The notes beneath the pieces are model-generated. The model searched no databases, was not told the origin of the DNA, and was given only the letters and a program-made list of their open reading frames with translations. A program made the position numbers and the translations under genes. From NCBI RefSeq assembly GCF_026571515.1, contig NW_026856914.1:124001-188000 (forward strand): a DNA stretch of 64,000 nt, given 5' to 3'. Below, in pieces: positions 17,401 through 56,600 of this stretch. The stretch's first letter is position 1, and each line of letters starts with the position of its first letter. The DNA is from Ruditapes philippinarum (lineage: Eukaryota).

Positions 17401-18793
17401 TTGGTTAAGATTTTGAGCAAATATTTCTCTTAAATTAAGCAATTTTAAGGGGAAGTAATGCTGTAGATACTTTCACTACCTCTGAGTACAAAACCTGAAT
17501 GAATAACCTCCCTTTTCTAATATAATCTTGTAAGAGTAAAATTAAAGTCATTTTTTACAATTTTTTTGATAAGGAGAAAAAAATTGAGTAAGCCTCAGCA
17601 AATTCTTTCTTTAAAGAAAATCATTAAAAAACATTGTCAAGTGTACACATACAGTGATCAAAGCTAAATTGTACTCGGGTACCATTCACAGAAAATCCCT
17701 AACATGCATCAAAAAATTTGAAAAAAAAAAGGTGCAGTAATAGCATTTATTCGATAAGAAATGCAAGGAAATGAAACACTATTTAATACTTAACCTGCTG
17801 AATTCAGTTAATGGACTTGCCTGGCTTTAAATATGGAAAAGTCCTTTCCAAGTTCAAAGGATTTTAATATCAAAATACATTAACTATAGCTTTCAACTGA
17901 ACAGTATAAGCTTGATCAGACTGCTGGCCTGGCTATATACTAGTATCAAACGCTTAATATCAAGTCCACTTATTGCAGGTAGGTCAGGAGTTAAAATTTT
18001 TGCATCATTTTAATTTAAAAACAAACTGCAAGTTTATATCCAGACCTATACCAGACCTTGATGTTATATCATATTCTATGACATAATAGGCAAATCTGGG
18101 AAGAAAAACAAATGTTACAAACATTCTTAGGCTAGCTTACTGTTATTTCAGTAACAATGTGTACTATATGTTTACATTAAGTATCAGTATAGCATATAGT
18201 ATATACAAAGTTCCAAAGTGCATCTTGATATGCATACAATCCTGTACATAACAAAACAAAACACAAAACAATACATCTAGCCTTTATCAATAAATGTGGT
18301 ATGACCTTTCCATGACCTTTCACCTGTAACAGCCATACTAGTGTGAAGGAGGTCCCCCATAAGTCGGGGTCTTGATATGGATACGTCCCATGACAATAGG
18401 ATGGCACAGTCTTGTATGGAAACCAAATCATATTTACAAAGATTCTATTCTACTTACTTAAACACATACTTATTGTTTTAACATTGATCTTGTCCCTTGC
18501 TATTATATTTGCTTGTTTTTCAAATTAATCTCTGGAAATTAATATTTCAATTAAAACTTTAGTGTTTATTTACATCATTTGTTTACTATAATGGGAAGAA
18601 ACGTAATACAACACTTGACTATAAATAGTTTCATTATGTATTGATGTAATCAAAACTTTATCATGCATTATATACGAAACAAACTTGTCCTATTCTGATT
18701 ATATGGAGTATAGGCATATACATTTGTAATATCCACTCTTAATTTAACTGTTATCTCATCTGGTATCTGAAATGGACTTTTCAATCTGTATAT

Positions 18794-19028
18794 GAGCCAT
18801 TTCATTACAAAACCAACATAATGGGTTTGTGACCAGCATGGATCCAGACCAGCCTGCGCATCTGCGCAGTCTGATCAGGATCCATGCTGTTCGTTATCAT
18901 TTTCTCTACTTGTAATAGGGTTTGTAAGCGAACAGCATGGATCCTGATCAGACTGCCCGGATGCGCAGGCTGGTCTGGATCCATGCTGGTCGCAAACGCA
19001 CAATGTTGGTTTTGTCGTGACGCGGCTC
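18794..19028. mobile_element. Sola-like palindromic MITE (copy 4)
   Basis: Full-length match to 466-702. Confidence 0.85.
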
Positions 19029-19193
19029 AATATTATCTGTCTTAATTAGAAAAAATTTCAAAGTAAGTATTACCTGGAATTTTTGATTTTTTTCGACTTG
19101 CCCATGGACAAGTTGAACTAACAGCTAGAGTTCACTTTCCCAAATAAATAGTGAAAAACAGATTTATCACACTATGGCTTTATTTAACCAATG

Positions 19194-30746: not shown

Positions 30747-31593
30747 TATATACACAATGTGGCCATGTACCCCTCAACGTGAATATGATTCTTTAGTTTT
30801 AAACATATTTATTGTATATATATACATACATACATACAACAAACATTATCGGGGGCCTATGATCTAATGGTGTCCTGGTGGCGCGGCGAAACTCCTGAAT
30901 GCTATCGAATTTCTTCCGCTTTGATTTTCGGGAATAGGAGCAGGATATGGAGAATATGGTGGATTCTCCAATACTTCAAATCCAGCAGATTATTGGTAGA
31001 TCAGGAAGTGTTGGAACACATCATCCAGACCCAACCCTGATCGTTTCCTGACATCGCGTTTTACAAGGTCTCATAGAGATCAGTGTACATGGCTTTGAGA
31101 CTTTAGCATTGCCTAGTGAACATTTTAAAAAGACATATGATTTTTGGCCCTAAGTTAAAATGGCTCCGCTCTGCCATAAATGTGACCGAGTGATTTATTT
31201 CTGCATTGAAATGAAAGAAAATTCGAATCCAACGTATAATATAATACGTTGGGCAAAATTTATTAACAACATTTCTGACAATCGCGTTTACAAGGTCTCA
31301 TAGAGATCAGTGCATAGAGATGAGCATTTTTGACGACATGATGTCTGGTCATCGTGTCTTGTGTGTCATTATCCTTAAGTTTTGAAAAACATCGCCTAAT
31401 TTACATGGTACATTTTAATCAGACTTTCAAGAAATGTTTAACTTTCAGGTGACCCTCTGCACAGAGTGTTAAATAAATCGGGTGTAATCCACAAGAATGA
31501 CACATGAGAATCAAATAAACTTTTTTAAGATAAAATATTTTATAAAAACTTTGTCACAGGGATGATATAAAATATTCATCCTGATTTTTTGTT

Positions 31594-31952
31594 GAATCGA
31601 ACCTGGGACCTTTGGAATAACCGTTTCGCGGCTCTACAGACTGAGCTATCCGGTCGCTTACACATCTCTCTCCCCCCCCCCCCCCCCCAAAAAAAAAAGT
31701 GAACAGTTCTGAACCCTGACATACTACCGCGCTATATTGAAATTCTGCCTCGAATTTCTTAGGTTATAGATCAATGCTAATTAAACTCTAGCTATATGCA
31801 GTCACTGTCCTCCGTCGGGCGGCAAATGTCACAGGGTAAGAAATATGTGCAGCCTGACCGGGGTTTGAACCCGGGACCCTCGGAATACTGTTCTGCGGCT
31901 CTACCGACTGAGCTATCCGGTCGCTAACACTTCTTTCCAACAGCTCTGAACC
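31594..31952 (-). mobile_element. Miniature LTR retroelement (TRIM-like) with tRNA-derived LTRs
   Basis: On the minus strand the LTR at 31929-31827 starts TG and ends CA and contains A box TAGCTCAGTCGG and B box GGTTCAAACCC. It is followed by PBS-like TTTGCCGCCCGACG, a ~165-bp internal region, a G/A polypurine tract, and a second truncated LTR at 31662-31594. Confidence 0.7.
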
Positions 31953-32400
31953 GTTTCAATTTTATTAATGTTCACAAAAACTGCCATGCACAGCGCTTAT
32001 ATATTTGAAATGCACCACTACCGTGTGTTCATTTACCAAAGTTATACAAATTATGGCCCTGAGTTCAACACAAGCCCGTCCTGGTGTAACCTTTACTTTG
32101 TGTAACCCTAACTTTATATAAACTTATATAGAAACACACATTTAAAACGTTAAACTTGTTTTGTTTGATGATAAAATAATAAAATGCCAATCAAAAGTTG
32201 ATGATTCTCTGTAATTTAACATATCAATCGCAATACACAGATCGGATACGGTATTTCGGTCTAACTTACGCATGTAAACATGCTGGGAGTTGCCGACAAG
32301 TTTTTTTCCAATATATCATGTAAAAGTCCACCTAAAATAAGTTAATTCATAGAAACAAAGCAGACAATACATTATTTATATATTTATTATTATGGTTGTA

Positions 32401-32412
32401 GAAAGCGAAAGT
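32401..32412 (+). promoter_or_regulatory. IRF-element/ISRE-like motif GAAAGCGAAAGT
   Basis: Matches the GAAA(G/C)(T/C)GAAA(G/C)(T/C) consensus, ~0.9 kb upstream of the DUF6119-like ATG. It is a short motif and could be chance. Confidence 0.3.
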
Positions 32413-33277
32413 ACAAAATGCCAACCTGCTGACATTTAGTTGGATTTGTGAAAAATTTGACATCAGTGGGTATATTCAAATCACAAATGGTTGTCCGACA
32501 CATTTTCAATCATATTTGTACAGACTTTATTTTCGTTTGGATGCCAAATATTCGTTTTACATTATCGAAGATTTAACTCTCTGTTTTTTTATTCTGGTAT
32601 AACTACTTTCAATCAGTATTAACTTGGAGGTTATTAATGAAAATAGCCAAGGATGTTCCGATCGATAACATGTACGTTGAAATGCTGCATTGTCTTAAGT
32701 TTGTGTAAGGTTAAGAATTGTCCTGCAGCATCACCTTGTGGTCCTTGTCAAGCGTTGCATAATAAAACGGACAGGACCATAAATGTGACCCCAGTTCTAT
32801 GTTCGTTTTATTTATATAGACATATATAGCATTCAGAAAAAGAAGGATTCTTCAAAACAATGATAAACCATGGCTTTTAGTAATTGCCATTTGGTTCATT
32901 TCTACACTTCCAGTCACTGTGCGATTACAAGTTTCTCCTGAAATGACTCTTTGTTGAGCTACCTGGGACAAGCACGATCCTCATCTTCTGAAGTTTTATA
33001 TTTTACACTTTTCCAATTAAATTCATGCTATTTTTTATGACTGATCTAAGGGGAAATCACATTACTTTGGCGATAATAAGAAAGGAACTACTCAGTAGTC
33101 TTTGTTTATTAAGCATTTTATTTCGACCAACTATGTAAATTTGCATGTTCACTTAGTATATTATATTATATTTACAGCTTGTTATATCAAAGATGTAAAC
33201 GTTGACCTTGGTATTAATTATTAAACACATAAGCATCAGTCAAAGGCAAACATCCATGGTAAATCTGTCGCAACTAC

Positions 33278-35887
33278 ATGGATCGACAGACGAGATTAGC
33301 ACCGATGACGAGCAATATGAAGCAACTTGATTATCTCGACAAAACCTTGGATTACATAAACATCATTAAAATCAATACCAGCGGTTTTAAGAAAAATGAA
33401 CATATTCAAAATCAGGATGATTTAGAAAATGCTGAGGGTATTATAGATGAGATCACTAACGGAAGAAAACGAAAGTCTTCATTCAAAACAAATGCTCCAA
33501 ATTCAAAAATTGCTAGAACCGATCCAAACTTATCAATACCGTCAGAAACTGTCAAAGCTACACAAGGACATGGATACAAGTTTAAACAGCTTTTCCTTCA
33601 ATCGCAAGTAATGGATATGCTGAAGCAGAAACGGGTCAATTTCGAAGTTCATCTATATTTAGTTGAAAACCATATAAGTTCTAAATTTTCTAAAGCCTTT
33701 TCAGAAATTGTTACCAAGGAATGTAAACAAAAGCTTCGTCAAGATAAAGAGGTTACTAAAAGTTACATGCTTTTTTTCTACAGAAATGTAAAAAAGGGAA
33801 AGTTTTTTACACCTGAAATATACGCATTATCTACCGGTTTCGCATGGCGAGTTGTAAAACCGTTTGCAGAGATGAATTTTGCCAAACATGTTGAGAGGCG
33901 GGTTCTTAGTTTTCCGTGTACGAAGTTTCATTATGATCTAATAGATGGGCATATATCCTCGATTTCAAAGTTGGCAAGACCTGGACGTGAAATAACATTT
34001 ACAACATGGGATTTTCTTGGGATATTGGTAAAGAATCGAACCAGACAAATCCGTGACAACTCATCTTTATACTCGTCTAAAATAGATGCATTCGTGACTA
34101 AAACAGGAAAACATATACCGACCAAATTTCAAGTTGGTAAAAACAAGTTGAAAATTCAGCGTAAGCTAAAGTTATCTCAACTCGGACGTTTGCTTGAGCA
34201 TTTTTCCAAAATAATCTCAAACGAAAAGCCGACGTACTTGATTAATGATAAGAAAGAAGAAGAAAAAGATAACCCATTGTTTCAAATGTATGATTTTGTT
34301 TCACAAGTCACTAAAAAAGGGGTTCGCGAAAATTTAAATAAAAAACTGAACAAAACTCTTCAAGACAGTATGGATGGCAAAAATTCAACAATATATTTAA
34401 TGCATAAGAAGAAAAGCGTATGGTCAAAGGCAGATGAGTTCAGTCTTCGATGTTTGGATAAATCAGCTTCGGGATCGAAAAAGAAACACTACAAAACAAT
34501 AAAGAAATGGAATGTCTTTCCAAAACTTGATGATGTCATGCGCGCGTTAAAAAAAGAGTATACACCAAAGTTTCAACCCGAATGGTTAGACAATGTCATA
34601 ATTGAATTTAGAAATATAAAGGCAGCCCTGAAGGAATGCATCTTCAGACGTTTTATTGTAGGAGGCATCGGAACGTATATATATAATCATGGAGAGTGGA
34701 TTGAGATGAAAGCTGAATACCTTTATTGCATTGAAAGGGACTTTGTTGAAATATTGAAGCATCACTGCCAAAGTGATCTACCTTTGCTTCTTCCATGGAA
34801 ACATCTTTGCAAAAAAGGGGAGAAGAAAAAAGATAAAAAGAAAGATGAACAAAAGTTCCAATTACAACAATTCAAGACCGAAACAATGGTACCAAAGTGG
34901 AAAAGTCATTATTAAAAAGTCTGCAAAGGTGAAAATTTACAAGAACTCACAAAGCTTATGGAAGACAAAACCGACCCAGTTTATGACTTTGAACGGTTTC
35001 AAACGATGAGTTCATGCAAGAAAGCTGCGAGCCTGTACAAGCTTTTGGAGTGTAGACTTGAAGAAGACAGCTACAATTCAGCCCATACATTACTGAACAT
35101 GATCTTACCTGATTCATCTGACACGAAAATAATAACATGTGATAAAAAACTGGTGAATGGTATCGAGCTATGCGACATAATGATTTTCGACAAGAGTGCT
35201 ATATACCTTGTTCACGTAAAAGCAAAATTCAATGGAGAATCTATTCGAGCGGTTTGCTCTCAGATAAGAAATGCTGCTGATTACATTTATAGAGAGATAA
35301 CTCTAGGAAGAAGTACTGGTATTTTCGATCAGTACTGGAAGGAGCTCACCAAAGCTGCTGCTAAACCAACAACACACGGAAATGAAGTGAAAAGTGTTTT
35401 GGAAAATATGACAAAGAAAACATTCAAGGAATATTTCAAAGAGGGGCGGGATATCATATTTGTCCTCGCGTGTCGAGACACCAGGAAGAATGCAGAATTT
35501 ATTGAATTTGGTGATAATTCTGGATTATTAAAAGTTCCTTTAGCAGAAGAGATCCAGAAAAAGATTAAAGAGAATACATCTGAAGTCATCTCTAAATTAA
35601 CAAAAGAAAAGTTTCTTACTGAAGATGGACATTTAACAAACAAGTTTATTTTAAAAGGAAAGAACACCAAAGAAGCATTTATAGAAAAAATAAAACAATG
35701 GAAATGTATTAAGAATAAGAAAACGGCAAGAAATGTGTCTAAAGTTCTTATGTCCGGGCTTTCAAAATCAAAATCCACTATCGCTAAAATGGATATCATT
35801 AGACTTCTAAAAGACTTCGAGCGTTACAACGTTGATGATCGCAAGCTACAGCTAAAATTGCTTAGTATCAAAAAGGATTTTCCTTAA
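33278..35887 (+). CDS. TIGR04141/DUF6119-like protein (bacterial-type, C-terminal PD-(D/E)xK-like nuclease motif), interrupted by one in-frame TAA at 34913-34915; possibly a pseudogene or split gene
   Basis: ORFs 33278-34915 and 34958-35887 are in the same frame, joined by TAA then KVCKGENLQELTKL (869 codons in total). Collinear family-like motifs: IYALSTGFAWRVV, NFAKHV, VGKNKLKI, YDFVSQV..K...ENLNKKL, TYIYNHGEWIEM, LPW, EEDSYN, CDKKLVNGIELCDIMIFDKSAIYLVHVK, IIFVLA, IAKMDIIRL. Splice acceptor TTTACAG ends at 33177. Confidence 0.75.
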
Positions 35888-36109
35888 ATGATCCGAACAC
35901 ATCAGTGGTTTTCTTAGCAACTCAGAAAGTAATTAACACATTGCAAACGGAACTTACAACCTAGGAGAAATAAGATGATAAATACTGCAAAATAAGTCAT
36001 TAACTGCGCATAATATGTAATTTATTGCTTGAGTATTTAATAGTTTTACTTTTCTTGAAATTTTAGTACATGCACAATTTTCTCAAGTAAAGTTTTCTTT
36101 AAATATTTT

Positions 36110-36270
36110 AGTTCATCCCGTGGCTTGCAGCATTCAGAAAGTACAATACCCAGAGTTTAGATATTTTGTATGCAGCACCCCCCTTTGGCCCTTTACGAAT
36201 CTTTTTTTTAATTGTGTTCTTTTCTAGCAATGTAAGGTGAGTGATCCAGGTCCATCATGACCCTATGTTT
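36110..36270 (+). mobile_element. Helentron/HINE-like repeat 3' end remnant
   Basis: Terminal AGGTGAGTGATCCAGGTCCATCATGACCCTATGTTT is a short hairpin plus T-run, resembling ends of bivalve Helitron-related repeats. Related decayed cores lie at ~28040-28560, ~31980-32130 and ~58225-58395. Confidence 0.4.
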
Positions 36271-37134
36271 TAGTTTCCCCTTTTGGTCGAACTTGTAAAG
36301 TCCCTATATGATTAATTTTTATACAGGGTCATAATATGATAAACAATTATTTATAGTTATACAGGCAAACTGTCTTAAACATTGACATGTGAAAGTATTT
36401 AGAATTGATATACATGTATTCAATTATCATAATTATTTTCTTTAGATATATTTGTAAATTTGTTGTCTCGGATATACATTAGTTACGCACTATGGAGGAT
36501 ATGGCGTTGGAAGAGAAGGAGACTGTTATTATATGGTTGGCAAAAAATATAAAAAATAAGGACACAGAGAAGAAAAACAATAGCTCTCGATTTAAGACGT
36601 GAAACGATAATTCCACACAAAAACATACATTTATCATGGTAACTTACGCTTTGCAATGTTTTATAATATCCAAATATAACTATAACTATGTAGCTGGCAC
36701 ACAATCATAGAAAATGAGGACTAGGGGGAGAAAATAAAAAAGATTTTCATTTCTTGTTGACATGCGTTATTATAAATGTGACTGAATTCAGGCCCAGCAA
36801 CGTAATACAAAATAAAATAAAGTAATTAATAAGCTAATTATCATAAGATGAATAAATAAAATGGAGGCAATAGAAATATTATAGCTATACAGAGCACAGT
36901 AGTGAAATATAGAGAAGTTGTCCTGTGGCCATTACTGCTTGAAAGAAAAACCTTCGAAATACAACAACACACGTTGAAAATACGATCTCAAACTCTTCAT
37001 ATCTAGTCGAGAGCTTAATACAATATTGCTGAAGATAACAGTTTATCATTTTCGTGTGTTACAAATAGGAGATCAGAAAAGAGAGCGATGTACCTGTACA
37101 TATTTCTTAAGCATTAAAGACAGCTTTAATTCTT

Positions 37135-38310
37135 AGAAGATATAGAGGATATTTGTTTGTTTGTGTGTAAGATGAAATTTTATTTCATCGAGTTGGCTTT
37201 AAAAACAGTATTCTCACGAGTGGCGTAGCCACGAGTGAGAATACTGTTTTTAAAGTTCACGAGATGAAATAAAATTACATCTTACATAACAAACAGACAA
37301 ATTTTCTTTTTATTTTATGCTTAAAAACAAGTTAAAACGAAATTTCCATAATTTTAACGTTAATATTAAAATTTGTTTCCCCCATTGAGAGCCCCATTTA
37401 GACGGAATTTCACATTAAAAACAAAAAGTCTTGAGCTGAAAAATAAGTCCGCCAATCAAGGTTAAATGACGGTGATATTTATTCATTTTATTAAAAAATA
37501 TGAATGATCGCTTGTTTTAATAATAAAAATAAACAATTCTTGTAGGAGAAAAAGTCCAACCATCCATCCATATTTCTGTTACTTACTGCGAATTTATATT
37601 AGACATGGCTTTGTAAATTGTAAGCGGCAGCCATTTTTTAAATTTGTGTATTTCATGGGAGGAAAATAATTGTGTAAGATTCAGAGGGATATAATTTGGA
37701 TTTGTTAGTCATACACCTTTTTAAAAGAAAGAAAACTTATTTGAGGATTGTAACAGACAAAAAATAAGTGTTGACAGATGTGAAAACATTCAGAAAAGGA
37801 GCTTGGAAAATGGAAAACTCGGAAGCTTGCTAAGGAACGCTGCCGCTGGGTTGTTTTACTTATTCTACGAGTGATGGTTGTCAATGCTTTTCAATTTTTC
37901 ATAAAGCATACGGCAGTTATTGCTCGTAGGATACTTTAATATGCCCAAATGTCATCAAGAGCAGTTTTGCATGGGGAAGAAATGTATTTTTCAGACTGTA
38001 AAAACGAAACAAAAAATTTAGAGACGAAATTTGGTGATTGGAATATAAATGAATAAAAGTAAGCTTTCTCTCTTTATTACTTTTGACTTTTAAGTTATTT
38101 ATCTATTTCAGCTTTGCTATTTCTTTTAACAGCCTGACATTGTCAGAATTGTCAGTAAAAATAAAATTGAGGTACCACATGGGGATAATCTTAAAAAAGT
38201 AGTTTCGTCATTGAAAAAAGTGAAATTATATTTTGATAATTTTCACTGTGAAATTATCAAATATAATTTTCACGGATAAATCAGTAATCCACTGAAAAGC
38301 ATAAAATAAA
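37135..38310. mobile_element. Hairpin-terminated interspersed element (possibly non-autonomous Crypton-like)
   Basis: ~150-bp palindrome at 37151-37300 with a perfect 21-bp core stem. TTTATTTTATGCTT (~37309) is inverted to AAGCATAAAATAAA (~38297). A second hairpin lies at 38220-38273. Confidence 0.5.
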
Positions 38311-38962
38311 TAGCTTTACAATACCTAATTAATCGGACTGTAATAGAAACTATTAATTGAAACAAGAAAAGCCATAGATATGATACAAAAGTCAATCGTT
38401 GAGTGCTTTATTAATGTGATATAATGTTTGCGTGTGTAAAAAAAATTATGTTAAAAGTGAGAGCATAAAAAGCTTGCAATACATAGACAAATGTCTGCAG
38501 AAAAGACAAGCAAATATAAAATCTATGTTTATATCATACAATTTAAAAAAGCAGTCATTTCGGTGAAATTATCGATCTAATGACAAATCTTAGTTTCATG
38601 AAAAAATTATAATTGCTATAAGAGTTTACATAACTAAACTTTTATGGAGAACAAAATAAATGTTGCTGCCAAAAGCAAAGGATGATTGTACCCACGGCCT
38701 CATATATTTGTGCCAATGTAAATGATACTTGTCGATATTTGTGTGAACATAGCGGTCTTGTTTTCAACATTTTTGTATTTGCTAAACATTTTATTTGTAG
38801 TTTTTTTGTAACTTGTAAGTACAGTTGACATCATTAAAGTCATCTATCATATTTTAAGTAAATTAATGCTGTTCAGAAATAATTACATATAAAATTATAG
38901 CAATAGCTAATCTGTGTTGCAGCAAATATGCCTTGTATTTAGCCTTCATATTATGCTTAATT

Positions 38963-39240
38963 ATCAAATTGAAAATTATCATTTTCTGTTCAAATTCTTT
39001 TCTGAATCAAACTTATGAAATGCTACATATTGTATTCAATTTAGTGTAATAATTATCTTAAAAAGTTGAAATCGAAAAGGGAAGAGCAACTTAACTTTAG
39101 CTCAATAATCAAATTGCATTTATCATTTTTTTTTGGTCCAAATTGTTTTCTAAATCAATGTGATGAAATGCTACATATTGTATTCAATATAGTGCGATGA
39201 TTAATTAAAGTTAAAATCGAAAAAGGAAAGAGCAACTTAA
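38963..39240. repeat. Tandem duplication of a ~140-bp unit
   Basis: ATCAAATTG...ATGAAATGCTACATATTGTATTCAAT...AAATCGAAAA.GGAA.GAGCAACTTAA occurs twice. Confidence 0.85.
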
Positions 39241-41377
39241 AGCATTTTGCAATAAATATGTTATCTCGTCATCAAACTGTGTACACGTGTAGTATCCATA
39301 GACTTTTCTTGTAGGCACATTATTTCTCCCAAATCCATATTTCTTTATTTTTTAGAAATGTCCTACATGTGTTTTATAAAGTTTTAATAATGGCTTAAGA
39401 GCATTTTAGATGTTAATCAATTGACGAAGTAGGGCTGAACATGCAATACTGTGTCGTAAATGAAACAAAATGTAAACAAAGTAGTATTTTGACTTCCATA
39501 CAAAATACCAATTCACTGTGATTATACCAAATGCCAACATAATAAAATCAGCAAAAGATAGTTTAAGCATATGACAAATGAGTATTGTGTTGGAAATTAA
39601 AATGATAGCATTTTTCAATTTTATGGGTCTTCAAATGGGCTTTTCTATCTTTCATTCTTGACGACATATGTATCATTTTAGGGAAAATTACAAAAAATGT
39701 ACTGATTGATTCTAATAATTTAAACATTTTTTTCTGTTATTTGAACTTATTCCTTGTAATTATGTGACTATGTTAAATCTATCATCATAATTTTCTGTAA
39801 AAATTATGTATATTTTTTACATGTGTTTATTTACAAAATTAATGAATGTATATGTATATACAATGTTTATGTTAAATATAAACCGCAAATCATAAAACTT
39901 GACGATGGTCATGTAATATATTTATGCCAATAAACAATTTGACTAAATTTTATGGATGAACAATGCAAACCATACCATGACGACGTCCATGCTGAAACTT
40001 GGTTCACACCGGTCGAATGGATAAAATCTGTTGCAGCTATGTGGCTAGCTATGGTAATGTAACTGCTGCCTGCAAACATTTTCCTGCTATACATGTTGCC
40101 TGATTTTTCATTAGATATTTTTTTCAACTGCCTGTAGTATGCAGACTTCATAATCTCTTACAGCTCGGGAGCATTCCGCCGCTGTTCCATTAAAGGTTGA
40201 TAATCTCCGCCGTATGGATGAATTAGCCAATGTTTCTTGATCGTTCATGTATTATGTTTGAGTTCTACTTAATTCGGTACTAGAGGACATAAGTTACACT
40301 TACCACTGACATCCATGAACGTGGTCTAAATCAAACCGAGCCTGCTACTTTAAAGGCGGTTATCAGGTCATTCTTTAACCATTAATTGTCGTGTTTATAT
40401 ATCTATATATAATGTATTTATATATAATTGTGTAATAAATTGATTTGGAAAATGTTATCTGTGTTTATCAATTTAATATGTCCTTGCCTAGTTTATTGTA
40501 AAGTGGTTATCTTAACATTGGAATGAAGTAACTATAACAACAACAACAACAACATCAACATAAAACCCAACTAAAATTATCATTTATATTTGATATTTGT
40601 AATCAAAGCAAGAGCAAAAAATAATGTAGGCCTCTAGATTTGGTCACATATGCACACAGGTAATGATTTTTAAGAAACGATGTTGTTATTGCATGCTCTA
40701 TTACAATAATTTGACTATCAAGGACAAGGTATTTCAAGGTCAAGGTCAATTTGAGTTGGATCATTTTTCAAGACATCGTCCTGAAGGAAGTTGTGCTCAA
40801 GTATAAAGTCAATCCGTTTAAAAATATCAACATTTTAGCCAAAAAGAGCAAATTTCAAGCAATGAAGTAAAATTCATTAATTTGACCTTCAAGGTCAAGG
40901 TCATTGATGAGCGAATACCATCATCATGTCGGTCTTCATTATGGTCTTATTCTTATAAGTACTGGTTTTTCTTTGCTCGGATAAAAATATAAAAGTATGT
41001 TGTTTATATGTGTTTTAAAGAAGAGTCGTGGCTTTGATTTTGGACGATGAGAATTTGAATTATTAATATATTTATATATTGATGAAATTGGTTGACATAA
41101 CTTTCATCATAGTTTCCACCATATTTAATACAACGTATTTTCACCAATAATTATGGAAGAGAAACTGCATTACATAACTGTAACATAACTAGTGAGCAAA
41201 AGCCCTTGAGATCATCTACCTGTCCTTCATCAGACTTATCATCGAATATGGTGATGTCTTATTTGACAATTGTACCAAAATAGAGAAAGTAGTTCGAACT
41301 AATCTAAAAGGAAGCTTAAAACATAGTCAATAGCATAAACTTATTCTATTTTACAAAATGGAAAATTATCATTTTTA

Positions 41378-42218
41378 ACATCTGTCATGAGACGTAACAA
41401 ATGGCAATCTTTCATAAGAAGTAACAAATGGCAATCTATCATAAGACATAACAAATGGCAATCTATCATAAGACGTAACAAATGGCAATCTATCATTAGA
41501 CGTAACAAATGGCAATCTATCATAAGATGTAACAAATGGCAATCTATCATAAGACGTAACAAATGGCAATCTGTCATAAGACGTAACAAATGACAATCTA
41601 TCATAAGACGTATCACATGACAATCTATCATAAGACGTCACACATGACAATCTATCATAAGATGTAACAAATGGCAATCTTTCATAAGATGTTACAAATG
41701 GCAATCTTTCATAAGATGTAACAAATGACAATCTGCCATAAGACGTAACAAATGGCAATCTATCACAAGACGTAACACATGACAATCTATCATAAGATGT
41801 AACAAATGGCAATCTTTCATAAGATGTAACACATGACAATCTGTCATAAGACGTAACAAATGGCAATCTATCATAAGACATAACAAATGGCAATCTATCA
41901 TAAGACGTAACAAATGGCAATCTATCATTAGACGTAACAAATGGCAATCTATCATAAGACGTAACAAATGGCAATCTATCATAAGACGTAACAAATGGCA
42001 ATCTATCATAAGATGTAACAAATGGCAATCTTTCATAAGATGTAACAAATGACAATCTGTCATAAGACGTAACAAATGGCAATCTGTCATAAGACGTAAC
42101 AAATGACAATCTATCATAAGACGTAACAAATGGCAATCTATCATAAGACGTAACAAATGACAATCTGTCATAAGACGTAACAAATGACAATCTTTCATAA
42201 GACGTAACAAATGACATG
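41378..42218. repeat. 27-bp minisatellite, ~31 copies
   Basis: Unit ATCATAAGACGTAACAAATGGCAATCT. It generates the 9-aa-repeat ORFs in the track. Confidence 0.97.
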
Positions 42219-43267
42219 ACAAATACATGCATGCCTAACTTATTTTACTTTAAGTTGTTAATTAGTCTTTAAATAATCTGACATCTTTAAATTAAGAAAT
42301 ATACGCAGATGTGTTCATGTACAGTAATCGGCGATTATCATGTAACTTTCAATGTGATACGTTAGCGCCATTCCATGTCATGATAAGCAGCGTATGTCTC
42401 CCAATTAATAAATGCGTGTGCTCTTAACCAAAAAAACAATGGACGGAACTAAAAAAATAGACTTCTGAAAGGGGATCTAAAGGCATGAAGCCTGCATATC
42501 ATAGGCGAGACGTCAAAAGAAAAATAAATAAAACAAGCAACATAATATGCTAAGGGTTGTTATACAGTATTAAAGTACGAATGACGGAACCACCCAAGTT
42601 GAAAAAGGTCAAGATCATTTAGAAGTAACTAAAATACCACATGACTTGTACACACAACAATAATGTCGTGCTAAATGATCTTCAGGGATCGAAACAATAA
42701 CATCCTTGATTATATATGCACGGGCGACTTTATACGGCCTCCAACCGGCACGAAATATAATTAAACAAGATCATCAAGGAAGGGCGGCATTCAATGAACG
42801 CATCCCAACAACAAAACCCTGCAACACAGACCACCGACAAGGAGCCCAACAGGAAACCAAACATCACAGGGCACTGGTGCAAATCACGGGCGGGATGTCA
42901 TTTTAAATTATTAGAAGTAGGTAATCATAGAAACCGATGTCCGTCGTATCAAAAGATATCTACTACCATATAATATTTTTTATGCTAATATTTCATGTTG
43001 CATCGTTTTACTATATTTTATAGAAACACGATAGTCTTACTGTAGATAAGGGTATAAATTCTGTAACATTTCAGTAAAAAATGTGCCTGATTATATGTTG
43101 AAAGTGCCATTTATTTAGCTTATATAAATGTGACATGTTAGAAACTTGACAAGGTGTAGACAATGCCTTGTTTTTGGTTGAAAAAAAATAATGTTGATCA
43201 TTAAATAGGTTAATGTTTAATAATAGGCAGGCAGGCACTAACCTATACTTAAAAAAACATTCAAAAC

Positions 43268-43780: not shown

Positions 43781-46700
43781 ATGGCTGACGTTGGAGGTAA
43801 ATCTGGTAGTGAAACAGACAGAAGAAGCTTTGGAAAGTGTTGAAATATAAACAGTTTGACAGTAATGTATCATTTCCCTTACAAGGTTACTTTTCCATTT
43901 GTAGCGAACACATATCTATAATACTTATAAATTATTATTGCTGTAGAAACCAGAAGAACAAAACGTCTCCCGGTTGACACAGTGTGCACTTTAGATCAAT
44001 AATGATTGTCAGACATGTGTTTATTATAAATTAAAAAGTTTACCGAAATAGACATCATTTTTCTTTTTGATGTAAAAAATACACTCGTTACATATCATCA
44101 GCTTACACATTCTGCTTTTGTTTAGAACTACTTTCAAATCCAAATAAGTCCCAGGTTATAATGAATAATAGCTAAGATTGATATTTGCCTAGTCCAACTT
44201 ATTAGACTTCTCAAAGAGACATCTTGAAAGATAGTTTTGGACGGGCGATGTCTTTTTCCAGTTTGACAGAACGAAAAAACAACAACAAAAAAACAAACAG
44301 TTAAATGGGTAAAACAGCTTGATTATTAAGGCTAATTTGTCTCGGCTAAAATCAAAATAGATCCCGTAAATATTACTAAATAATATAAGTTTGACAAAAG
44401 TTTCAAATGGTCTGTGCAACAAAAAATATAGTTAAAGAAGAAAAATATAGATAGTTACGGATTCAAGTATTTCGAAGCGGACGTTAGGCACTTAGGAGTC
44501 AAATAGTACGATCGTAAAACACACATGAGTTGAAACAGTTAAGAAAATAAATACTAAAAGAAAAAATATCCTGAAATAATATATATATATATTGGTTTGA
44601 ATTTTTGCAATCATTATGAAGTAGAATTGGTTTTAATGTCGTCACTTTTGTCATGTGGTTTGAATGTTGTCAGGGATAATGCACAGTCTGTGGTATTAGT
44701 TGTTTTTCCTACACCTCCAACCAAGAAGCCTGTAGATGAACTTTGGATTTATTTCATAAATGTGTGTGTATGTGCGTGCACGTGCGTGTGTGTGTGCGTG
44801 GGCCTGCGTGTGTGTTTTCTTTTTACTAGCACACCTGACACATAATGTCACATCGTTCAATGTTTAGCGTCCATCCACATTAAGTTACTTAATTCTCTAG
44901 TTATCACATCTGAGCCTCAACTTTAACTTCCTCAGGATGTTTGTCCTAGTAGTTCCTCGGGCGAGTTAGAATACGTGTCATCTTAGATTAAAAAGTAGGT
45001 CACAGGGCCAAACAATCGTGTTAGCTGTTAAAGTTTTGAGTATTTAAATATTTGCAAGACTGACACATTTTAAAACTTTTGTGAATCTTTATTCTTACAA
45101 CATTCTGTATAAAATATAAATTATTTTTTCCTTATTTCTCGTTTAAGCAAATTTGAGAAGTAAATGTATTTAGGCATAGCAGGTCAAAAGAATAAACAAC
45201 AGAAAAAAAAGAAGAAAATATAAACTTATGGAAAATCCGTCGATGGTAAACATTTTAGACATTCTGTCTGTCATCTTCTACCTGTTACTCTCTTTACAAA
45301 GGAAATAACAAGTACTTCATTTGATGTCAAAACTGTTTTATTAAAATGGAAAGATGATGTTTGCAATCTTTTGAACATTTATAATTCTGTTGATGATGAA
45401 ACAATTCATGTACCAACGAAACATGTATATGTCCAGGAGCTTGATAATTATATAAGCATAAACGAAATTGTTAAAGTTATTGAAAAAGCTAAGTTAAACA
45501 AAGCTTCAGGTATTGATCTTATTCCTGTGGAGGTTTTAAAAAATGACACAGCCTCATTGATTCTGCATAGTTTTTTTAATGTCTGTTTTGAAACATGAAA
45601 AGTACCTTCAACTTGGTCGAAAAATATTATTATCCCAATTCCAAAATCTGGGACTAAAGACAAGCGCCAACCTTTGTCTTATAGAGGTATTTCCCTTGCT
45701 TGTACTATGTATAAGTTATATACCAGCATTCTTAATGAACGAATTGTAAAATGGACCAGTAATGTTGATACTTTAATAGAAGAGCAAAATGGATTTCGAA
45801 GAAATCGTAGTACTATTGACCATGTGTCTAGTGTAACACACGCAAGAAATGTAAATTATCCACCTTTTGTGCTTTCATTGATTTTCGAAAAGCATTTGAT
45901 TCAGTTAATAGAAACGTGCTATGGAAAAGGTTAGAAAATAAAGGTATTTCAACAAAAATGTTAAATGCTGTCATCTTGTGTCAGGGTAAACAATTTAACA
46001 ACTGACTGGTTTTCAGTAAATTCCGGAGTAAGACAAGGATGTTCACTGTCATCTGTATTGTTTAATATCTATATTAATGACTTAGCTTTGTTACTAAAAA
46101 TAGTAACAAAGGCATTGCCATTAATGAAGATATTGTTGCAATTCTTCACTATGCCGATGACATTGTATTGATAGCTGAAAACGAAGAAAACCTTCAATGT
46201 ATGCTGAATTTATTGTCTAATTGGTGTACTGTAAATAGTATGACTATAAATGTTGAAAAAAGTAATGTTAGTCATTTTAAAAACCCTTCTACACCAATTT
46301 CAAATTTACATGTGGTGAGTCTGCGTTAGAAACTGTCAACCAATACATGTATTTGGGTCTATTGTTGAACGAATATTTGGATTACAATATCACGGCTAAA
46401 CATGTAGCTCAAAGGGCAAGTCGTGCTCTTGGTCTCCTTATAGCAAAATTTAAAAATTCAGGGGGTTTGCATGTTTATACGAAATTGTATTATACGTGTG
46501 TTGTACCTGTTATATCACATGGAGCTTCTTTTTGGGGTACCAAATCTTATATTTGTATAAATAGTATTCATAACAGAGCTATGGGGTATTTTCTAGGCAC
46601 GGGTAAATACACACCAAATGCTGCTGTATATGGTGAAACGGGTTGGAATCCAATTATTGTTGAACAATGGAATGCAGTGGGTAACCACTGGCACAGAACA

Positions 46701-47990
46701 CTTTGTCTTAGAGAAAGTAGAATGAATAAGAAAATTTTCAACTGGGCTTTTAACAAAAAGGGAAAAAATTGTAAAAACTGGTGCTATATTGTTAAAAACA
46801 CTTTATTGTCATTAGGACTTGATGTTTATCAATATGTTCATTTCCCGTTTAATCGCAAAACTATGGCTGATGATTTAACTAAAGCCTTGTTTGATGTTCA
46901 TATTGCTCAGTGGACAGCGGATATTTCCAGGGAAAACAGTAGCAATGGTGCCGGGAGAAATAAACTTCGTACATACAGGCATTTCAAAAAAGAGTATGTT
47001 TCAGAGAAATATTGTTGTTTATTAATTCCTGTTTCTAACAGGTCAGCTTTGGCTAAATTCCGTTGCGGAGTTGCACGTATCCGTCTTGAAACTGGTCGAT
47101 ATGAATATTTACCTGAACATGAAAGGATATGTCCACTTTGTCTAAATGGTATTGAAAATGAAATGCATGTAATAATGGAATGTTCTATGTATGACAATAT
47201 TAGGAAACCATTGTTAGATTATGCCAACTGTACTTGTGACTTATTTACTACAATGTCAAAACATGAAAAGTTTATGTACTTATTTGCCCACCAGGACACT
47301 CGTATGATAAGATTGCTCATTAAATTGTAACACACCACTATTATTTGACTATACAATAGCACAATTTTAACAAGTTTTTAATGGTTTTATTTGTTAATAC
47401 AAGTACAATTTAAAGATGTTTGGAAATTATTATTTTTAAAGAAGTAATGTTTTGTAATTAGGACAAAATAAATTATTTTGACTAGTTGTACAAGTACAAA
47501 ATTTTAACTTTGTTTCAAGATTTTTGTCATACATAATAAGGTAAATTATGATATATCAATTTAGTGACACGTGCTTTTTCCCCTCTTCAATGAATAACGG
47601 ATGCATCCTTGTTGAATTGAAGAAATGAGAATTTAAATGTTAATTTTCTAGATAAATATGTATCACTTGGTCTATTTCATTAAATTATCCTTGATAGTTT
47701 GTTGTTGTTTGTTGCTGTTTTTTCAGACACAAGGGAGTACTTGGAGACACATATAAGCTTGGATGGCTTTAAGAAGTTCTCGGGGAAATTTAGATAAGTG
47801 ACAGCACGGAAAGAGGTGCAAAATTATACGAGATCAATAACAAATAAGAACTGTCCAACTGTGCAATAGATTTTTTTCCATATGGGAAACTTATCAGATT
47901 ATGGAAGTGAACCTGTTAAAACATAAAAGAGAATTGATTTCAAAAATGGCCATGCCAAATGAAGATGTATGTAATTTTCAAATATAAAAT
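43781..47990 (+). pseudogene. Possible decayed two-exon gene remnant (death-fold-like spacing)
   Basis: ATG GCT GAC GTT GGA G|GTAAAT (43781-43796) is phase-compatible with acceptor TTTTTCAG|AC at 47727, giving MADVGDTREYLETHISLDGFKKFSGKF, then stops and frameshifts (ISDST...ELSNCAIDFF..WETY). Confidence 0.25.
45310..47340 (+). mobile_element. 5'-truncated, frameshifted non-LTR retrotransposon (RTE-X-like) reverse transcriptase
   Basis: KASGIDLIPVEVLK, PIPK...YRGISL, EEQNGFR, FIDFRKAFDSV, GVRQGCSLS..LFNIYINDL, YADDIVLIAE, YLGL, KLRTY..FK, LAKFRCG..RLETGRY and a C-x2-C...H...C knuckle, with stops and frameshifts. Confidence 0.9.
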
Positions 47991-51250: not shown

Positions 51251-52588
51251 CATCACTACAGAAGTTTGTTTTTCGTGCAACCTTGAACAAAATTTGGATA
51301 CATTTGATTGTTCTAAACATGGTCATTTAAGAAACTTTGTTTTTCAAGGAAAAGCGCACCTTCATCGACACTGTCCAGCCTCCAGATTGTTTCAATACGA
51401 CAATAGACAGACTACTTGAATTGTGATTGAACAAAAATTAATGATTGTAGATCAGCAAATCCTAAATATAAAAAGACTGCAACAATCCTTTAATAAAATG
51501 ACAGCCACACTTTTTAATAAAATGACTACCACACTCCTTTAATAAAATGACAGTTTATGAAGGATATTTACAAATCTTTTTTTGGTTAATGGGATTTATA
51601 CATTACTCAGTTATTTTAATTTTAATGATCACAGAATCATGACAAATGTATACCTACCCAGGAAAACATGATTCAGCACCCTTAATTAGCATTACTAAAT
51701 GTGAAATATCTCAAATTGGCGAGATTATCTTTCAATATGGACTGAAGCATTTATCAATTTGAAAGAAACTTCACAATTTCTAGTGACTGAAAAGGGAATA
51801 GTGCAAACCATGATCAGATCTTACAACGCAGATATATGCTTCCACAATATAGCTTCTCTATAATTCTATAAAGTGTAAAAATTGTATAAAATATATGTAA
51901 CCATGCAGCTAAACTGAAATTTAATCTATGTATGCATGGAATATAGAAAATTAAGTAGCAATCATTTCATACAGTGTTTGATTTCTCTTAAACTCTTTTA
52001 CAATGTTTGTTTTTTTTTATTTATTTTTTTTTATTAACAATTACAAAAATACAAATGTAATTATATTTAGAAATTCTAAAATATTCACTTTATTGATATT
52101 CATTTCATTTTGTTAACAAGAATATGTGAAGCTGTAGATGATATGTTTTGAATTTGTAACATAATATAAACATTTACAAGATATCTTCCAGATTGACCAC
52201 AATAGAGAAATTTATGTGGCTTGTAAATAAAAAAAATCTTGTAACAGTTATCATATTTTATGTATTAATTAATATAAAAGGACCATTACAGTTATCAAAA
52301 TTGATTTATTAATAAACATGTCAGGGTTATGCAGGAGATTAGTGCTTTTCATGTATTTAAAAAAACAACTTATAATGAGGGCCCAGTGGATTTGTTCTTT
52401 ACTTGAAAGTTGAAAACACAAACCTTTTTTAGGCAAAGACTGTCAGGAGCGTTTGGCAAATGTGTATATTTATTTGACCTTTATAGCTGAATGGCTTAAA
52501 GCTTAGTAGTCATTTGTCTAAATACTAGAACAAAACATTGCTTCTTGGACAGTCAAAGTTCTTGACAAGAAATGTAAATAATACATAT

Positions 52589-52822
52589 GAGCCGCGTCAT
52601 GACAAAACCAACACAATGGGTTTGCAACCAGCATGGACCCAGACCAGCCTATGCATCCAGGCAGTCTGGTCAGGATCCATGCTGTTCGCTATCAGTTTCT
52701 CTACTTGTTTTAGGGTTGTTAGCGAACAGCATTAATCCTGATCAGACTTCGCATATGCGCAGGCTGGTCTGGACCCATGCAGCTGGTCGCAAACCCATGT
52801 TGGTTTTGTCATGACGCGGCTC
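52589..52822. mobile_element. Sola-like palindromic MITE (copy 5)
   Basis: Match to 466-702 with an ATAT TSD. Confidence 0.85.
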
Positions 52823-53691
52823 ATATATATCTTCCAAATTCCATTATAGGTCATTTAAAATGTAAAGAGTTTGTTACAGTTATATTTCTCTTGGGAGAAA
52901 TTAGGATATTTTTGATAGACTGCACAAATATCTGTTTAAGGTCACATAATTATAGGCTGCCTCAAAAACAAAGTTACTATTAAAGTTTGGCCATGATAGC
53001 TACAGGGATTCTACTTACCCTAAATGTAAGGTGCTTATGGGGGTATTGAAAGTATAAATTAAATAGTTGCTCAGAAGGAGATATTTTATGAGATGATTTA
53101 ATTTCAAATTTTAAGTTTCTGCATTTTGACAGATTTCTGTAGATGTTTAAATGGATCAACACCATTTATTTGTTATCCTCTTCTGACATTACAGACAGTG
53201 GACTATATTTTGACATTTATTAACATAAAGTTGGTTATTTTCTTTAAACAACAGGACTGTTACTGTATAATTAAATGATGTTTTCATACTGTACAATTCT
53301 TATATACAGTACTATATACATGTATATAATTAAATAAATGTCACAACTTCTGTTTTTTAGGGTATATGACAAAAAAAAACAGAAAGATGTGTTTCATCCA
53401 GTGTTCACAGGGGTTGAAGAGCTTTGCTAGCACTTACAACTACAGCTAGGCCAAATAAACATTGTGTACTAGGTACATGTATAAAATAGTACAGTTGAAC
53501 TTGAAGGCAGAAAACATAGAAGAAATCAGTGATCAAAGTATCTGTGGATCTGAAAGTGGGAAGTAAATATTATGAACAAATGACTTATGTGATTTTCATG
53601 CATTTACAGAAGATAAAATAAGGATTTTTGACCTTTTTTATTTATTTTAAAAATAAAATTTGGGATGCAGAATTATGTGACATATTAAATA

Positions 53692-56600
53692 TCCTGTACG
53701 AAATTTTGGCACGGATTCTGGGCGGAATTGGCACGGAATTCGCACGGAATCAGTGATTTCTGGGCGGACCAGGGACGGAAACGCAAAATCCATGCCATTC
53801 TGTCTCACAAGAAAAATATTTTGTTCACTTTTCTGGGCGGAAAACTAGAAAAATTCCGGCTGGAATTTTATTTTGAGCAGAATTTATACTTAAACATTTC
53901 ATCTTGGACAGAATTTTCAACTTTGAAATTTTTTTGGGTAGGAATAGTCTTCACTATGGGCGGAATTCTATACTTAAACATTTTTCTTGAACAGAATTTC
54001 ACATATAAGATGTCCAAATCATAATTGTACTCCTGTTTTTGCACTTGCAGACATTGAAATTTTACCTACTGTACTTATTTTTTTTGCTGAACCAATAATT
54101 ACAGGTGTATTTTTAGAATTAATATATTATTTTTTTATAGACATGAAAATAGGCCTTCTTTTTAGATAAAAAATGTGGCATTAATAATATATTGTCAGAC
54201 TAATTTATATTTTTTGTACTGAAAAACAACTGTAATAATCTTAGTGTAGAATTTGAAAACATTCACCTCCAAAATGCTTAAGTTTATAATATAAAGATTT
54301 TTCATACAGCTTGTATTATAATACATTTACTGTATTATGAATTTTTAAATATGATTTTAGGACATCATCTAAAAGCAACATTAAAATAAGAATGCTTTTT
54401 AAATTTGAATATACTATAGAATATAGGGCAGTCACATCGGGACAAGATTATAAGTGTGCTTGCCATTTTAAATTCTAAGAATTCATGATTTTGTTATAAA
54501 AAAAATAAACAAAACAAAACAGTGCATGAAATAATCTCATATATAATGCCCTTTTAATCTATATAAAATTGATCAACCAATATGCCCAATAATTGCTTTT
54601 ATTTACCGTAGGTAAATAAATACTACTATGTATATTCTCACTGAGATTATATTCACCTAGATTTTACACTACACAGATCAGAGCTCTGATAAAACTCTAC
54701 TGACCAGTAGTTTCCCATCATCTATGCATGACTGGTCATTCCAACAGATCAGGCTGTTCCATGTAATTATTTTGGGGAGAGATAACATTATAAATTGCAT
54801 ATGATACTAGAATTTGTCTAGGACATATTGCAATTTTTTTGTACAAAAATTTGTAATTGTTTTTTAAAATTTATATATATCTATTTGTTATTTGATTTAT
54901 CTTTTACATTCAATGAATGAAAGTTAAGATGATGAGTAAATTAACCCTGTTTTACATAATGATGGACCGGTCCATTATACAGTAAACTGTTGGGAATTTT
55001 GAATTCTAAGATATCTGGGTCAGCATTACAGAGGATGTACTTGATATTTTAACAATTTTGGAGTAAAGTTTTGTTTAAGATCTCAAAGTGTTAAAGTAAT
55101 TGGTATGATAACATGGGACAAGGAGATGTATAACATAATCAGGTAATTATTAACTTTTAGTTACATTAATTTAATATGACGACTATCAATACTATTAGTA
55201 GCCAACTAAAATTTGTAACAAGAGGTCATTGTTGTTTTAGTATTTTCAACTTCATACATTTGTTGTTTTTTTTCTGATAATTGTTTTAAATCTTTAATAC
55301 ATGTATTATTTGCAAGTTAAAAATTATTCAATGATTTTTTTGTTAATATAATGATTGTGTAAATCTATATTGTATAAATAGCATGTAAGTATATCTTTTG
55401 CATTTCCTGGAAATTAAACAAATTAAATAAATTTGATTTAATAGGACTAAATGGTACAATCAGTAGTTTTGTACAGTTGAACAGGGTCATCATAATCATT
55501 TATTATTTTACATGTTTGTGTTGTCTTTCCTATGGAACAATCTAAAATTACATTTTACACTCATAATTTGCAGGCTGCTCAGGGACTTAAGTGCTGACTG
55601 TGAGATTGCCAGGTGTTTAATAATGATGTGCAGTATTAATCCTGAAAAGGTATATTTTTAAATCTCTATACTTAACTATTCAACATCTTTCCTTGAAAAA
55701 TACATAACCAGTAATAAATAGTGTCACACATAAAGCAGTCAGTGACTCAGTTAATTCTTATACAGAGCAATTCTTAAACATTTGTACACTTGAATAACTG
55801 ATTCTGTGTTGCTTTACTATTTTTGAATATGCTTTATAAGCATAGTTAATATTTAATACTGTTGAAACATAAAATTTGATATTATTAAAAGATATAAAAT
55901 ATAACTGCATATAATTATGCAATAAAACATAATTAAGCCGTGTCATGACAAAACCAACATAATGGGTTTGCGACCAGCATGGATCCAGACCAGCATGCGC
56001 CTCAGCGCAGTCTGATCAGGATCCATGCTGTTCGCTATCAGTTTCTCTACTTGTAATAGGGATTGTAAGCAAACAGCATGGATCCTGATGAGACCGCGCA
56101 GATGCGCAGGCTGGTCTGGATCCATGCTGGTCGCAAACCCATTATGTTGGTTTTGTCATGACACGGCTCAATTCATTACAAAATATTTGTTTAATTAATT
56201 ATTAATTTTATTATTAAAGGTGAGCACATCCACAAGAAGTTCTAGGAACAAAGGCAGTGGACTTAAAACAGACATGGATTAAAGAAATAGTAATTTAAAT
56301 AATCAGAAACACTTGAAACAAATTTATGATTGAAACACTTCCAGCAAAATAATTGCAAAAAAAACCCACAAAGTGTTGGATTCTAAGATTCCAAAACCTG
56401 CAGCTAGACAAAAACTGTGTTATAGTGAATGTAGGGTATTCTATTCTGTATTTGGACTAAAGGATATGATATTTTTTTATTAAATTTTGTGAAAGAAAAT
56501 TTAATGTGATACATTATTGATAATTTTATCCCAAAATATATGATCATGTTAAACTCATGAAATTCCGCCCCCTGAATTCTGTCCCAGAATTCCGCCCAGA

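Follow-up and report, generated by a model that had tools for sequence, protein, structure and literature searches.

The 64,000-nucleotide stretch of Ruditapes philippinarum DNA considered here, which we call the window (NCBI RefSeq assembly GCF_026571515.1, contig NW_026856914.1, positions 124,001 to 188,000 of the forward strand), carries at 33278-35887 (+) a single frame of 870 codons counting its terminal TAA (869 without it), which codes for what its sequence identifies as a divergent protein of the DUF6119 family. The initial annotation of this DNA had described one intronless frame of 869 codons, and that description is borne out, its mention of a read-through protein already allowing for an interruption: an internal in-frame TAA at 34913-34915 (codon 546) divides the frame into pieces of 545 and 323 residues and precedes the nuclease-like domain of this copy. 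The stop is a real feature of the sequence, seen in independent DNA and RNA contigs: it is matched without differences by a DNA contig of the run X1 (34666-35791) and by an RNA-seq contig of the run X15 (34799-35064), which belong to separate studies. Twenty public runs from nine studies hold all or part of the stretch, and their contigs were placed on 31500-37400. The features of the locus and the repeats that surround it are collected in the table.

Features of the DUF6119 locus and of the surrounding DNA, in window coordinates
Feature	Position	Strand	Basis or remark
3′ splice acceptor (ttacag; AG at 33176-33177)	33172-33177	+	sequence; RNA-seq contig starts at 33178
5′ untranslated part of coding exon	33178-33277	+	in-frame TGA before the ATG; two-codon upstream open reading frame; covered by RNA contigs
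Segmental-duplication unit, ~10 kb	33234-42996	+	blastn, 82-90% identity to C5401:201.7-209.4 kb and to C12801 (reverse)
First piece, 545 codons: putative RdgC-like N-terminal module (~33341-34222) and middle DUF6119 domain	33278-34912	+	Pfam, hhalign, structural match
Premature TAA	34913-34915	+	the paralogue codon here is a sense codon, one base different
Second piece, 323 codons	34916-35884	+	predicted nuclease-like core, helical insert, conserved tail; AlphaFold model
Predicted nuclease-like core	~35006-35485 plus last strand 35840-35866	+	model and VIA-align matches
Core motif I-E-L-C-D ... H-V-K	35162-35221	+	I83 to K102 of the second piece
Predicted helical HhH/SAM-like insert	~35525-35761	+	VIA-align matches
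Terminal stop TAA	35885-35887	+	translation
Likely 3′ untranslated region	35888-37145	+	covered by RNA-seq contigs; AATAAA at 36733, 36811 and 36851; DNA carry-over possible
Near-perfect palindrome, 59-nt arms with 3 nt between	37166-37286		in a DNA run, word depth here reaches hundreds of thousands
~245-nt element, similar to a miniature inverted-repeat transposable element (MITE) or a short interspersed nuclear element (SINE)	462-706, 12826-13075, 18790-19036, 52577-52826, 55911-56178	both orientations	blastn, 80-94% identity
Long interspersed nuclear element (LINE) reading frame, open, 1166 residues	59071-62568	-	Pfam domains: Exo_endo_phos endonuclease and RVT_1 reverse transcriptase

The gene in the window is transcribed, and a single exon, preceded by a spliced 5′ leader, holds all of its coding sequence. 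The entire frame is covered by contigs of two RNA-seq runs with the label 'mollusc metagenome', which tile 33178-35888 and run on to 37145. The contigs of the runs X15, X16 and X12 begin matching at exactly 33178, the first base after the AG, and the RNA-seq contigs of X15 and X16 carry 15-20 unmatched letters upstream of that position, as expected for a spliced leader. The spliceosomal acceptor that had been noticed ahead of the frame, whose ttacag ends at 33177, is thus the point at which the RNA contigs of three runs break.

Several observations support the view that the gene is integrated in animal DNA rather than being a contaminant, as the initial annotation had also held. The frame sits in a 210-kb contig of the 1.41-Gb assembly; its G+C content (0.335-0.348) is indistinguishable from that of the rest of the window (mostly 0.27-0.38); and contigs of a DNA run span both of its ends (32896-33313 and 35764-37145). 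Animal repeats are present around it, as had been noted, namely the LINE, the ~245-nt and ~290-nt elements and the palindromic element, and its diverged copies elsewhere in the genome share its flanks.

Membership of the DUF6119 family is indicated by several lines of profile evidence. Scanned with hmmscan, the first piece passes the Pfam model DUF6119 (PF19614) at 33.6 bits against a gathering cut-off of 27 (E 2.2e-8), and the mollusc-clade protein P0004 matches the same model at 32.7 bits. Since the pass of the window's first piece is marginal, homology was examined by three further routes: phmmer, a family alignment and profile-profile comparison with hhalign. A phmmer search with the open paralogue described below against 1.84 billion representatives returned 125 relatives, including bacterial proteins of ~590 residues, and one short bacterial relative bears the source name 'TIGR04141 family'. 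PF19614 is matched by 28 of the 43 members in the family alignment. A profile of 14 proteins grouping with the molluscs aligns by hhalign to one of 16 short bacterial proteins with a probability of 100% (E 1.6e-51) over 527 columns, spanning template positions 6-546 of 590, which makes the homology to the bacterial family full-length. Likewise, in the ESM Atlas, DUF6119 is the single Pfam set of 28 among the 30 clusters closest in sequence features, and the DUF6119 clusters listed there are bacterial (Bacillota, Actinomycetota and Bacteroidota). The outcome is different for the NCBIfam model TIGR04141 (cut-off 35 bits), which matches neither of the window pieces nor the paralogue: short bacterial forms serving as positive controls score 116.8 bits (P0091) and 92.9 bits (P0101), the Pecten protein P0095 just 20.1 bits, and the Mercenaria and Haliotis proteins and the chlamydial-type P0025 do not score. 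The family had been named as TIGR04141/DUF6119; its Pfam half stands and its TIGR04141 half falls below the cut-off, so that the gene, judged by these profiles, is a true but divergent member of DUF6119 and not a member of TIGR04141. The motif blocks that had been listed for the family are in good agreement with the actual consensus of its short bacterial members.

Compared with these short bacterial forms (DUF6119 or 'TIGR04141 family sporadically distributed protein', ~590 amino acids), the mollusc protein is collinear over ~530 profile columns and has the same core residues and the same conserved tail. It differs in being ~280 residues longer, with an N-terminal extension, in having an insert of ~88 residues between the middle domain and the core where the short forms have 4-7, and in being encoded by an animal gene behind an intron.

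The core of the family had been placed at 35162-35221, and this placement proves exact: E84, D87, K102, R111 and Q116 (numbered by the second piece) are invariant in a 49-sequence alignment, and E50, N54, D76 and H100 occur in at least 90% of its sequences. The core motif is conserved across 100 family members, and all the DUF6119 core residues (E..YN, D, (I/V)ExxD, HVK, R and SQ) occur in the window's second piece. AlphaFold models were obtained for the second piece from the 49-sequence alignment (predicted local distance difference test (pLDDT) 89.7, predicted template-modelling score (pTM) 0.82) and for the paralogue from a 102-sequence alignment (pLDDT 81, pTM 0.78). In the former, the first long helix carries Glu50, strand 1 is followed by Asp76, strand 2 starts with Glu84 and Asp87, strand 3 contains His100-Val-Lys102, and the next helix bears Arg111 and Gln116; the family tail that the paralogue has lost forms its final helix and strand.

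When compared by VIA-align with 48,161 chains, for which a Z of 8 is given as the safe level, the C-terminal part recovers N.BspD6I (Z 6.1), a CdiA-CT toxin domain (6.1), the R.BspD6I small subunit (5.9), Bse634I (5.8), NucS (5.7), FokI (5.5), EcoT38I (5.5), Cfr10I (5.2) and HamA (5.0). The helical insert (second-piece residues 204-282) recovers the Rad51 N-terminal domain (Z 5.4) and SAM domains (Z ~5). Weak Foldseek rows name RdgC (third, probability 0.57), Hjc, PfoI, HincII and N.BspD6I. It is therefore plausible that the C-terminal core resembles a nuclease of the PD-(D/E)xK restriction-endonuclease type with an inserted helical HhH/SAM-like bundle; the earlier suggestion of a variant restriction fold is in keeping with the mostly restriction-fold enzymes at the top of the VIA-align matches (Z 5.0-6.1), and it gains weight because the conserved residues sit where the fold needs them. 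Indeed, the model has the same helix-strand-strand-strand-helix order as the PD-(D/E)xK nucleases (N.BspD6I/R.BspD6I, Bse634I/Cfr10I/NgoMIV, the FokI cleavage domain, NucS and HamA), and would likewise have a Glu on the first helix, an Asp starting strand 2, xK in strand 3 and a Gln on the next helix. Unlike these enzymes, which it matches at a Z of only 5-6.1 and a sequence identity of 6-15%, the DUF6119 core has a His in place of the (D/E) of the (D/E)xK motif and a helical bundle inserted ahead of the last strand. In enzymes of the Cfr10I/Bse634I/NgoMIV group, another part of the chain supplies the acidic residue of (D/E)xK, and by analogy Glu84 could be its stand-in here. For the N-terminal module (paralogue residues 38-369), the best structural match is RdgC, the recombination-associated DNA-binding protein of E. 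coli (2owl_B; Z 6.6, below the safe level, 195 of 301 residues, root-mean-square deviation 4.9). At 11% identity and with no signal at the sequence level, this match suggests a resemblance to RdgC that we take as a lead only.

The relatives of the gene fall into a mollusc set and a bacterial set. Mercenaria mercenaria has two homologues (48-51% identity), Pecten maximus has one, and Haliotis contributes five homologous proteins from three species; orthologues lie on chromosome-scale scaffolds of three molluscs besides Ruditapes. P0004, P0006 and P0008 (38-42% identity) also group with the bivalves, P0006 being encoded on a 1.35-Mb contig. Among the 30 relatives (of the 125) whose source was looked up, molluscs are the only eukaryotes. 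The gene is not private to this animal and belongs to an old mollusc family.

The next-nearest relatives are proteins of 1000-1550 residues from metagenomes. A scan of prokaryotes with one genome per species, biased by its query (the alignment of one long-form subgroup) to that subgroup, returned ten loci. Seven belong to Chlamydiae, Chlamydiales or Parachlamydiales, some of them on complete chromosomes; the remaining three come from metagenome-assembled genomes, one being nearly identical to a Chlamydiales locus. Four of the metagenome proteins match the scanned loci at 99.9-100% identity. A second subgroup, that of P0025, is chlamydial too: P0025 has a full-length match of 53% identity in one Chlamydiota genome, and it matches at 31% in two others. 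Of 301 Chlamydiota genomes sampled, 13 match PF19614 and 31 match P0025; no match to PF19614 occurs in 14 control genomes. The last ~270 residues of P0025 (758-1030) form a shared module that also recurs alone in other chlamydial open frames of 1800-2800 residues (genomes G038, G161, G218 and G275).

In phylogenetic trees, whose supports are Shimodaira-Hasegawa-like approximate likelihood-ratio (SH-aLRT) values from quick searches, the short bacterial forms split from all the long forms (103 rows, LG+G4; support 99). The same tree unites nine named mollusc rows, three bivalve-like rows and P0022 in a 13-row clade (99), and a 67-row clade (98) takes in all the chlamydial rows. With the short forms as root, a 47-row tree under the LG+C20 mixture model groups 12 mollusc rows in one clade (98), to which the Pecten lineage and three rows of unassigned origin are joined (89), and this mollusc-plus-Pecten group stands beside a Chlamydiota-containing clade (84). 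The long forms also have in common an insertion between a conserved W and a conserved E ahead of the core, with a median length of 88 residues in the molluscs and 143 in the other long forms, chlamydial ones included, versus 5 in the short forms, which lack it.

The Chlamydiota long forms (1000-1500 amino acids; for example on the Parachlamydiales chromosomes OY969899.1 and OY969414.1) are thus placed as the sister clade of the mollusc proteins, align with mollusc-clade proteins over up to ~790 residues at 22-38% identity, and have the same insert before the core; the family tail closes the mollusc proteins, whereas most of the chlamydial ones scanned add a C-terminal deubiquitinase. A prokaryotic origin by horizontal transfer is supported as the best reading of these trees, in line with the acquisition proposed in the initial annotation, with the mollusc group sister to a Chlamydiota-containing clade and the bacterial short forms outside both. 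Most likely, the long-form branch passed a single time between a chlamydia-like lineage and early molluscs, probably from bacterium to animal.

A C-terminal UCH-type deubiquitinase is found in six of the eight chlamydial proteins scanned (L012, L014, L015, L017, L018 and L020), and L019 has a weak Ulp1-like match in its place; such fusions would point to action inside host cells rather than to phage defence. One chlamydial genome, G138, has two DUF6119-deubiquitinase genes side by side. The proposal of an anti-phage gene is not supported by the comparison: no defence model of PADLOC-DB 2.0 matches either window piece up to an E of 1, the 50,697 phage records searched contain nothing related to the short bacterial form P0091, and the nearest bacterial kin are the chlamydial long forms with their deubiquitinase fusions. 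In a plasmid collection, there were just two weak matches, both in Streptomyces. The Streptomyces anthocyanicus plasmid NZ_CP109103.1 (L033, 46491-61609) carries a short-form DUF6119 gene beside a type I restriction-modification operon, with TPR, AAA-ATPase and helicase genes on its other side. This single setting looks like a defence island and is the one hint in favour of the defence idea. Conservation of the core residues across bivalves and a gastropod argues for a long-term function of the mollusc family, judging from its alignment; an immune-effector role for it in molluscs is speculation.

Searches of the 1.41-Gb genome with both pieces, the family profile and Pecten's deeper paralogue found only three loci, and no copy in the assembly is without a lesion. 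Besides the window copy, there is a paralogue 44 kb downstream on the same contig; counted from its ATG, its frame is open over 894 residues, yet it has lost its last ~36 residues through a 2-nt insertion and a 98-nt deletion; this tail is conserved from bacteria to molluscs and retained by the window copy. The third copy, on contig C12801, has many frame-breaking indels and stops. The ~10-kb unit that the three have in common has no terminal inverted repeats at its ends and, by its low copy number, is best described as a segmental duplication and not a high-copy element. Between the window copy and the paralogue, the synonymous (dS) and nonsynonymous (dN) divergences before the stop are 0.40 and 0.19 (ratio 0.48), and after it 0.05 and 0.046 (ratio 0.90). 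Over this last third, 34916-35790 of the window is ~95% identical to C5401:203513-204409. Because dS there is 0.05 as against 0.40 in the first two thirds, the data suggest that gene conversion has recently homogenized this part of the two copies, which lie 44 kb apart, and that constraint relaxed afterwards. The window copy is probably a recently inactivated paralogue, that is, a young pseudogene. With lesions in all three copies, its adoption as an immune effector, which had been raised for this very copy, appears unlikely.

Our preferred reading, to which we give a probability of roughly 0.6, is that of a nuclear mollusc gene of the long-form DUF6119 branch, with RdgC-like and nuclease-like parts, derived from an ancient bacterial transfer and, in the window copy, recently inactivated. 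The protein would consist of an RdgC-like N-terminal module, a middle domain and a PD-(D/E)xK-like C-terminal core with a helical insert, its conserved core residues following the order E...D...ExxD...HxK...R...Q. Given the RdgC-like module and the restriction-type core, its likeliest activity would be metal-dependent DNA binding and cutting, as predicted from the models. A single, ancient horizontal transfer from bacteria would have brought the family into molluscs, and the nearest living bacterial kin appear to be the long forms of environmental Chlamydiota, which are intracellular bacteria. In the present genome, the gene would then have been triplicated together with ~10 kb of flank, and the window copy would later have gained its premature TAA just before the nuclease domain, such that it can encode at most the 545-residue putative DNA-binding part.

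A number of points weigh against this reading. At the level of family assignment, the PF19614 cut-off is missed in hmmscan by the second piece when taken by itself, by the paralogue and by the Mercenaria proteins. With respect to the predicted fold, all the VIA-align Z scores are below 8 and hence represent weak fold matches; and of the structural check proposed for the protein, AlphaFold gave confident models (pLDDT 81 and 90), but Foldseek against the PDB returned no significant match for either of them (second-piece E-values >0.07). A literature search found no paper studying DUF6119, only passing mentions, and no nuclease activity shown for any DUF6119 protein. Regarding the locus itself, RNA libraries can hold DNA; the exon upstream of 33178 was not located within 31500-37400, being either farther away or represented by overhangs too short to place; and the TAA, for which the evidence is of contigs rather than reads, could be polymorphic. 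As for the origin, the deeper forks of the trees have supports of 84-89 from quick searches only, the deep mollusc-side rows P0022, P0045, P0049, P0069 and P0113 are of unassigned origin, and the mollusc and chlamydial clades are sisters and not nested, so that the tree as such does not fix the direction of transfer.

Two of the alternatives accept the gene as a resident of the genome and differ from our preferred reading in the state of the window copy or in the direction of the transfer. We consider it rather unlikely that the window copy is still functional, be it through a polymorphic TAA with intact alleles, a useful 545-residue DNA-binding product or readthrough. What speaks for such a copy is a single lesion in 869 codons, where the third copy shows free decay, together with its transcription, the past constraint that a dN/dS of 0.48 indicates for the first part, the presence of the conserved tail missing from the paralogue, and the breaking of the X12 and X16 contigs near the stop, as at a heterozygous site; set against this, the TAA is unchanged in contigs of two studies (one of DNA and one of RNA), the dN/dS of the nuclease part relative to the paralogue is 0.90, and the sequence shows no sign of programmed readthrough. 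The reverse transfer, whereby intracellular chlamydial parasites captured a long form of molluscan or other eukaryotic origin and added a eukaryote-type deubiquitinase to it, strikes us as improbable. It requires a step from bacteria to animals first and then a second transfer back; the outgroup and the bulk of the family are bacterial and drawn from several phyla; the chlamydial side is also the more diverse (67 of 103 tree rows), and the eukaryotes among the relatives traced to a source are molluscs alone. Nonetheless, sister clades permit either direction, the chlamydial long forms carry UCH domains, which are found mainly in eukaryotic proteins, and few Chlamydiota genomes have a match (the 13 and 31 of 301 noted above).

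The remaining two alternatives bear on whether the gene is an ordinary animal gene at all. The frame could code for the nuclease or transposase of a mobile element, with the 10-kb unit as the transposon: all three copies stop sharply at common boundaries near 33.2 and 43.0 kb, and the protein seems to couple nuclease-like with DNA-binding-like parts. However, a mobile element is hard to reconcile with a total of three copies in the 1.4-Gb genome, of which two lie 44 kb from each other in tandem orientation, or with unit ends that lack terminal inverted repeats, and a profile search of the window pieces and the paralogue found no transposase family; moreover, LOC124276581 of Haliotis bears the annotation of an ordinary, two-isoform gene. 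We hold this explanation to be very improbable and, on the copy number and the absence of terminal inverted repeats, have rejected the unit as a transposon. Bacterial contamination or a chimeric assembly join might be entertained for a member of a bacterial family in a marine invertebrate, as chlamydia-like organisms live in such animals. Its probability is close to nil in our estimation, and it was rejected on the frame's composition, which is that of its flanks, on the three diverged copies with their shared non-coding flanks, and on the contigs of other runs that bridge both ends of the frame. The splice acceptor with its RNA support, the orthologues on chromosome-scale scaffolds of three other molluscs, and an identity to chlamydial proteins of only 22-38%, for the window pieces and the mollusc-clade proteins alike, also stand against it.

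If our preferred reading of a long-form DUF6119 gene of bacterial origin is right about both the transfer and the long retention, it would be a clean case of an animal lineage in which a nuclease of bacterial origin has persisted over hundreds of millions of years, and the chlamydial nuclease-deubiquitinase fusions would become candidate host-directed proteins. The long-form branch is common only to molluscs and environmental Chlamydiota among the named relatives, and the DUF6119 family gains a testable outline in the form of a predicted DNA-binding module joined to a restriction-type nuclease core. In a more far-reaching scenario, which we regard as doubtful and offer tentatively, a long-form DUF6119 nuclease passed more than 500 million years ago from an intracellular, chlamydia-like bacterium to the ancestor of bivalves and gastropods, when these two classes had yet to separate; molluscs have since kept it under selection as a working enzyme aimed at DNA, with viruses, intracellular bacteria and mobile DNA as conceivable targets, and the chlamydial fusions are secreted into host cells. 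In that event, the same nuclease module would be used by both sides of a host-parasite conflict. The window itself has a more modest meaning, that of a transcribed paralogue that has probably just lost its nuclease half.

The surroundings of the gene offer some further observations. Two additional open reading frames on the forward strand of the window, at 46347-47330 (327 residues) and 13552-14082 (176 residues), have no Pfam match. The ~245-nt element also occurs at C12801:10886-11151, and the ~290-nt element has more than 3000 candidate genomic copies. The palindrome downstream of the gene marks a very high-copy foldback element, because the very high word depth coincides with it. The LINE frame looks like a young copy of a non-LTR (long terminal repeat) retrotransposon. 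Finally, a tandem array with a 27-nt unit (30.9 copies, 92% match) lies at 41380-42213 inside the duplicated 10-kb unit, and a 285-residue minus-strand reading frame at 41375-42232 is a by-product of this array, its weak Pfam matches being spurious.

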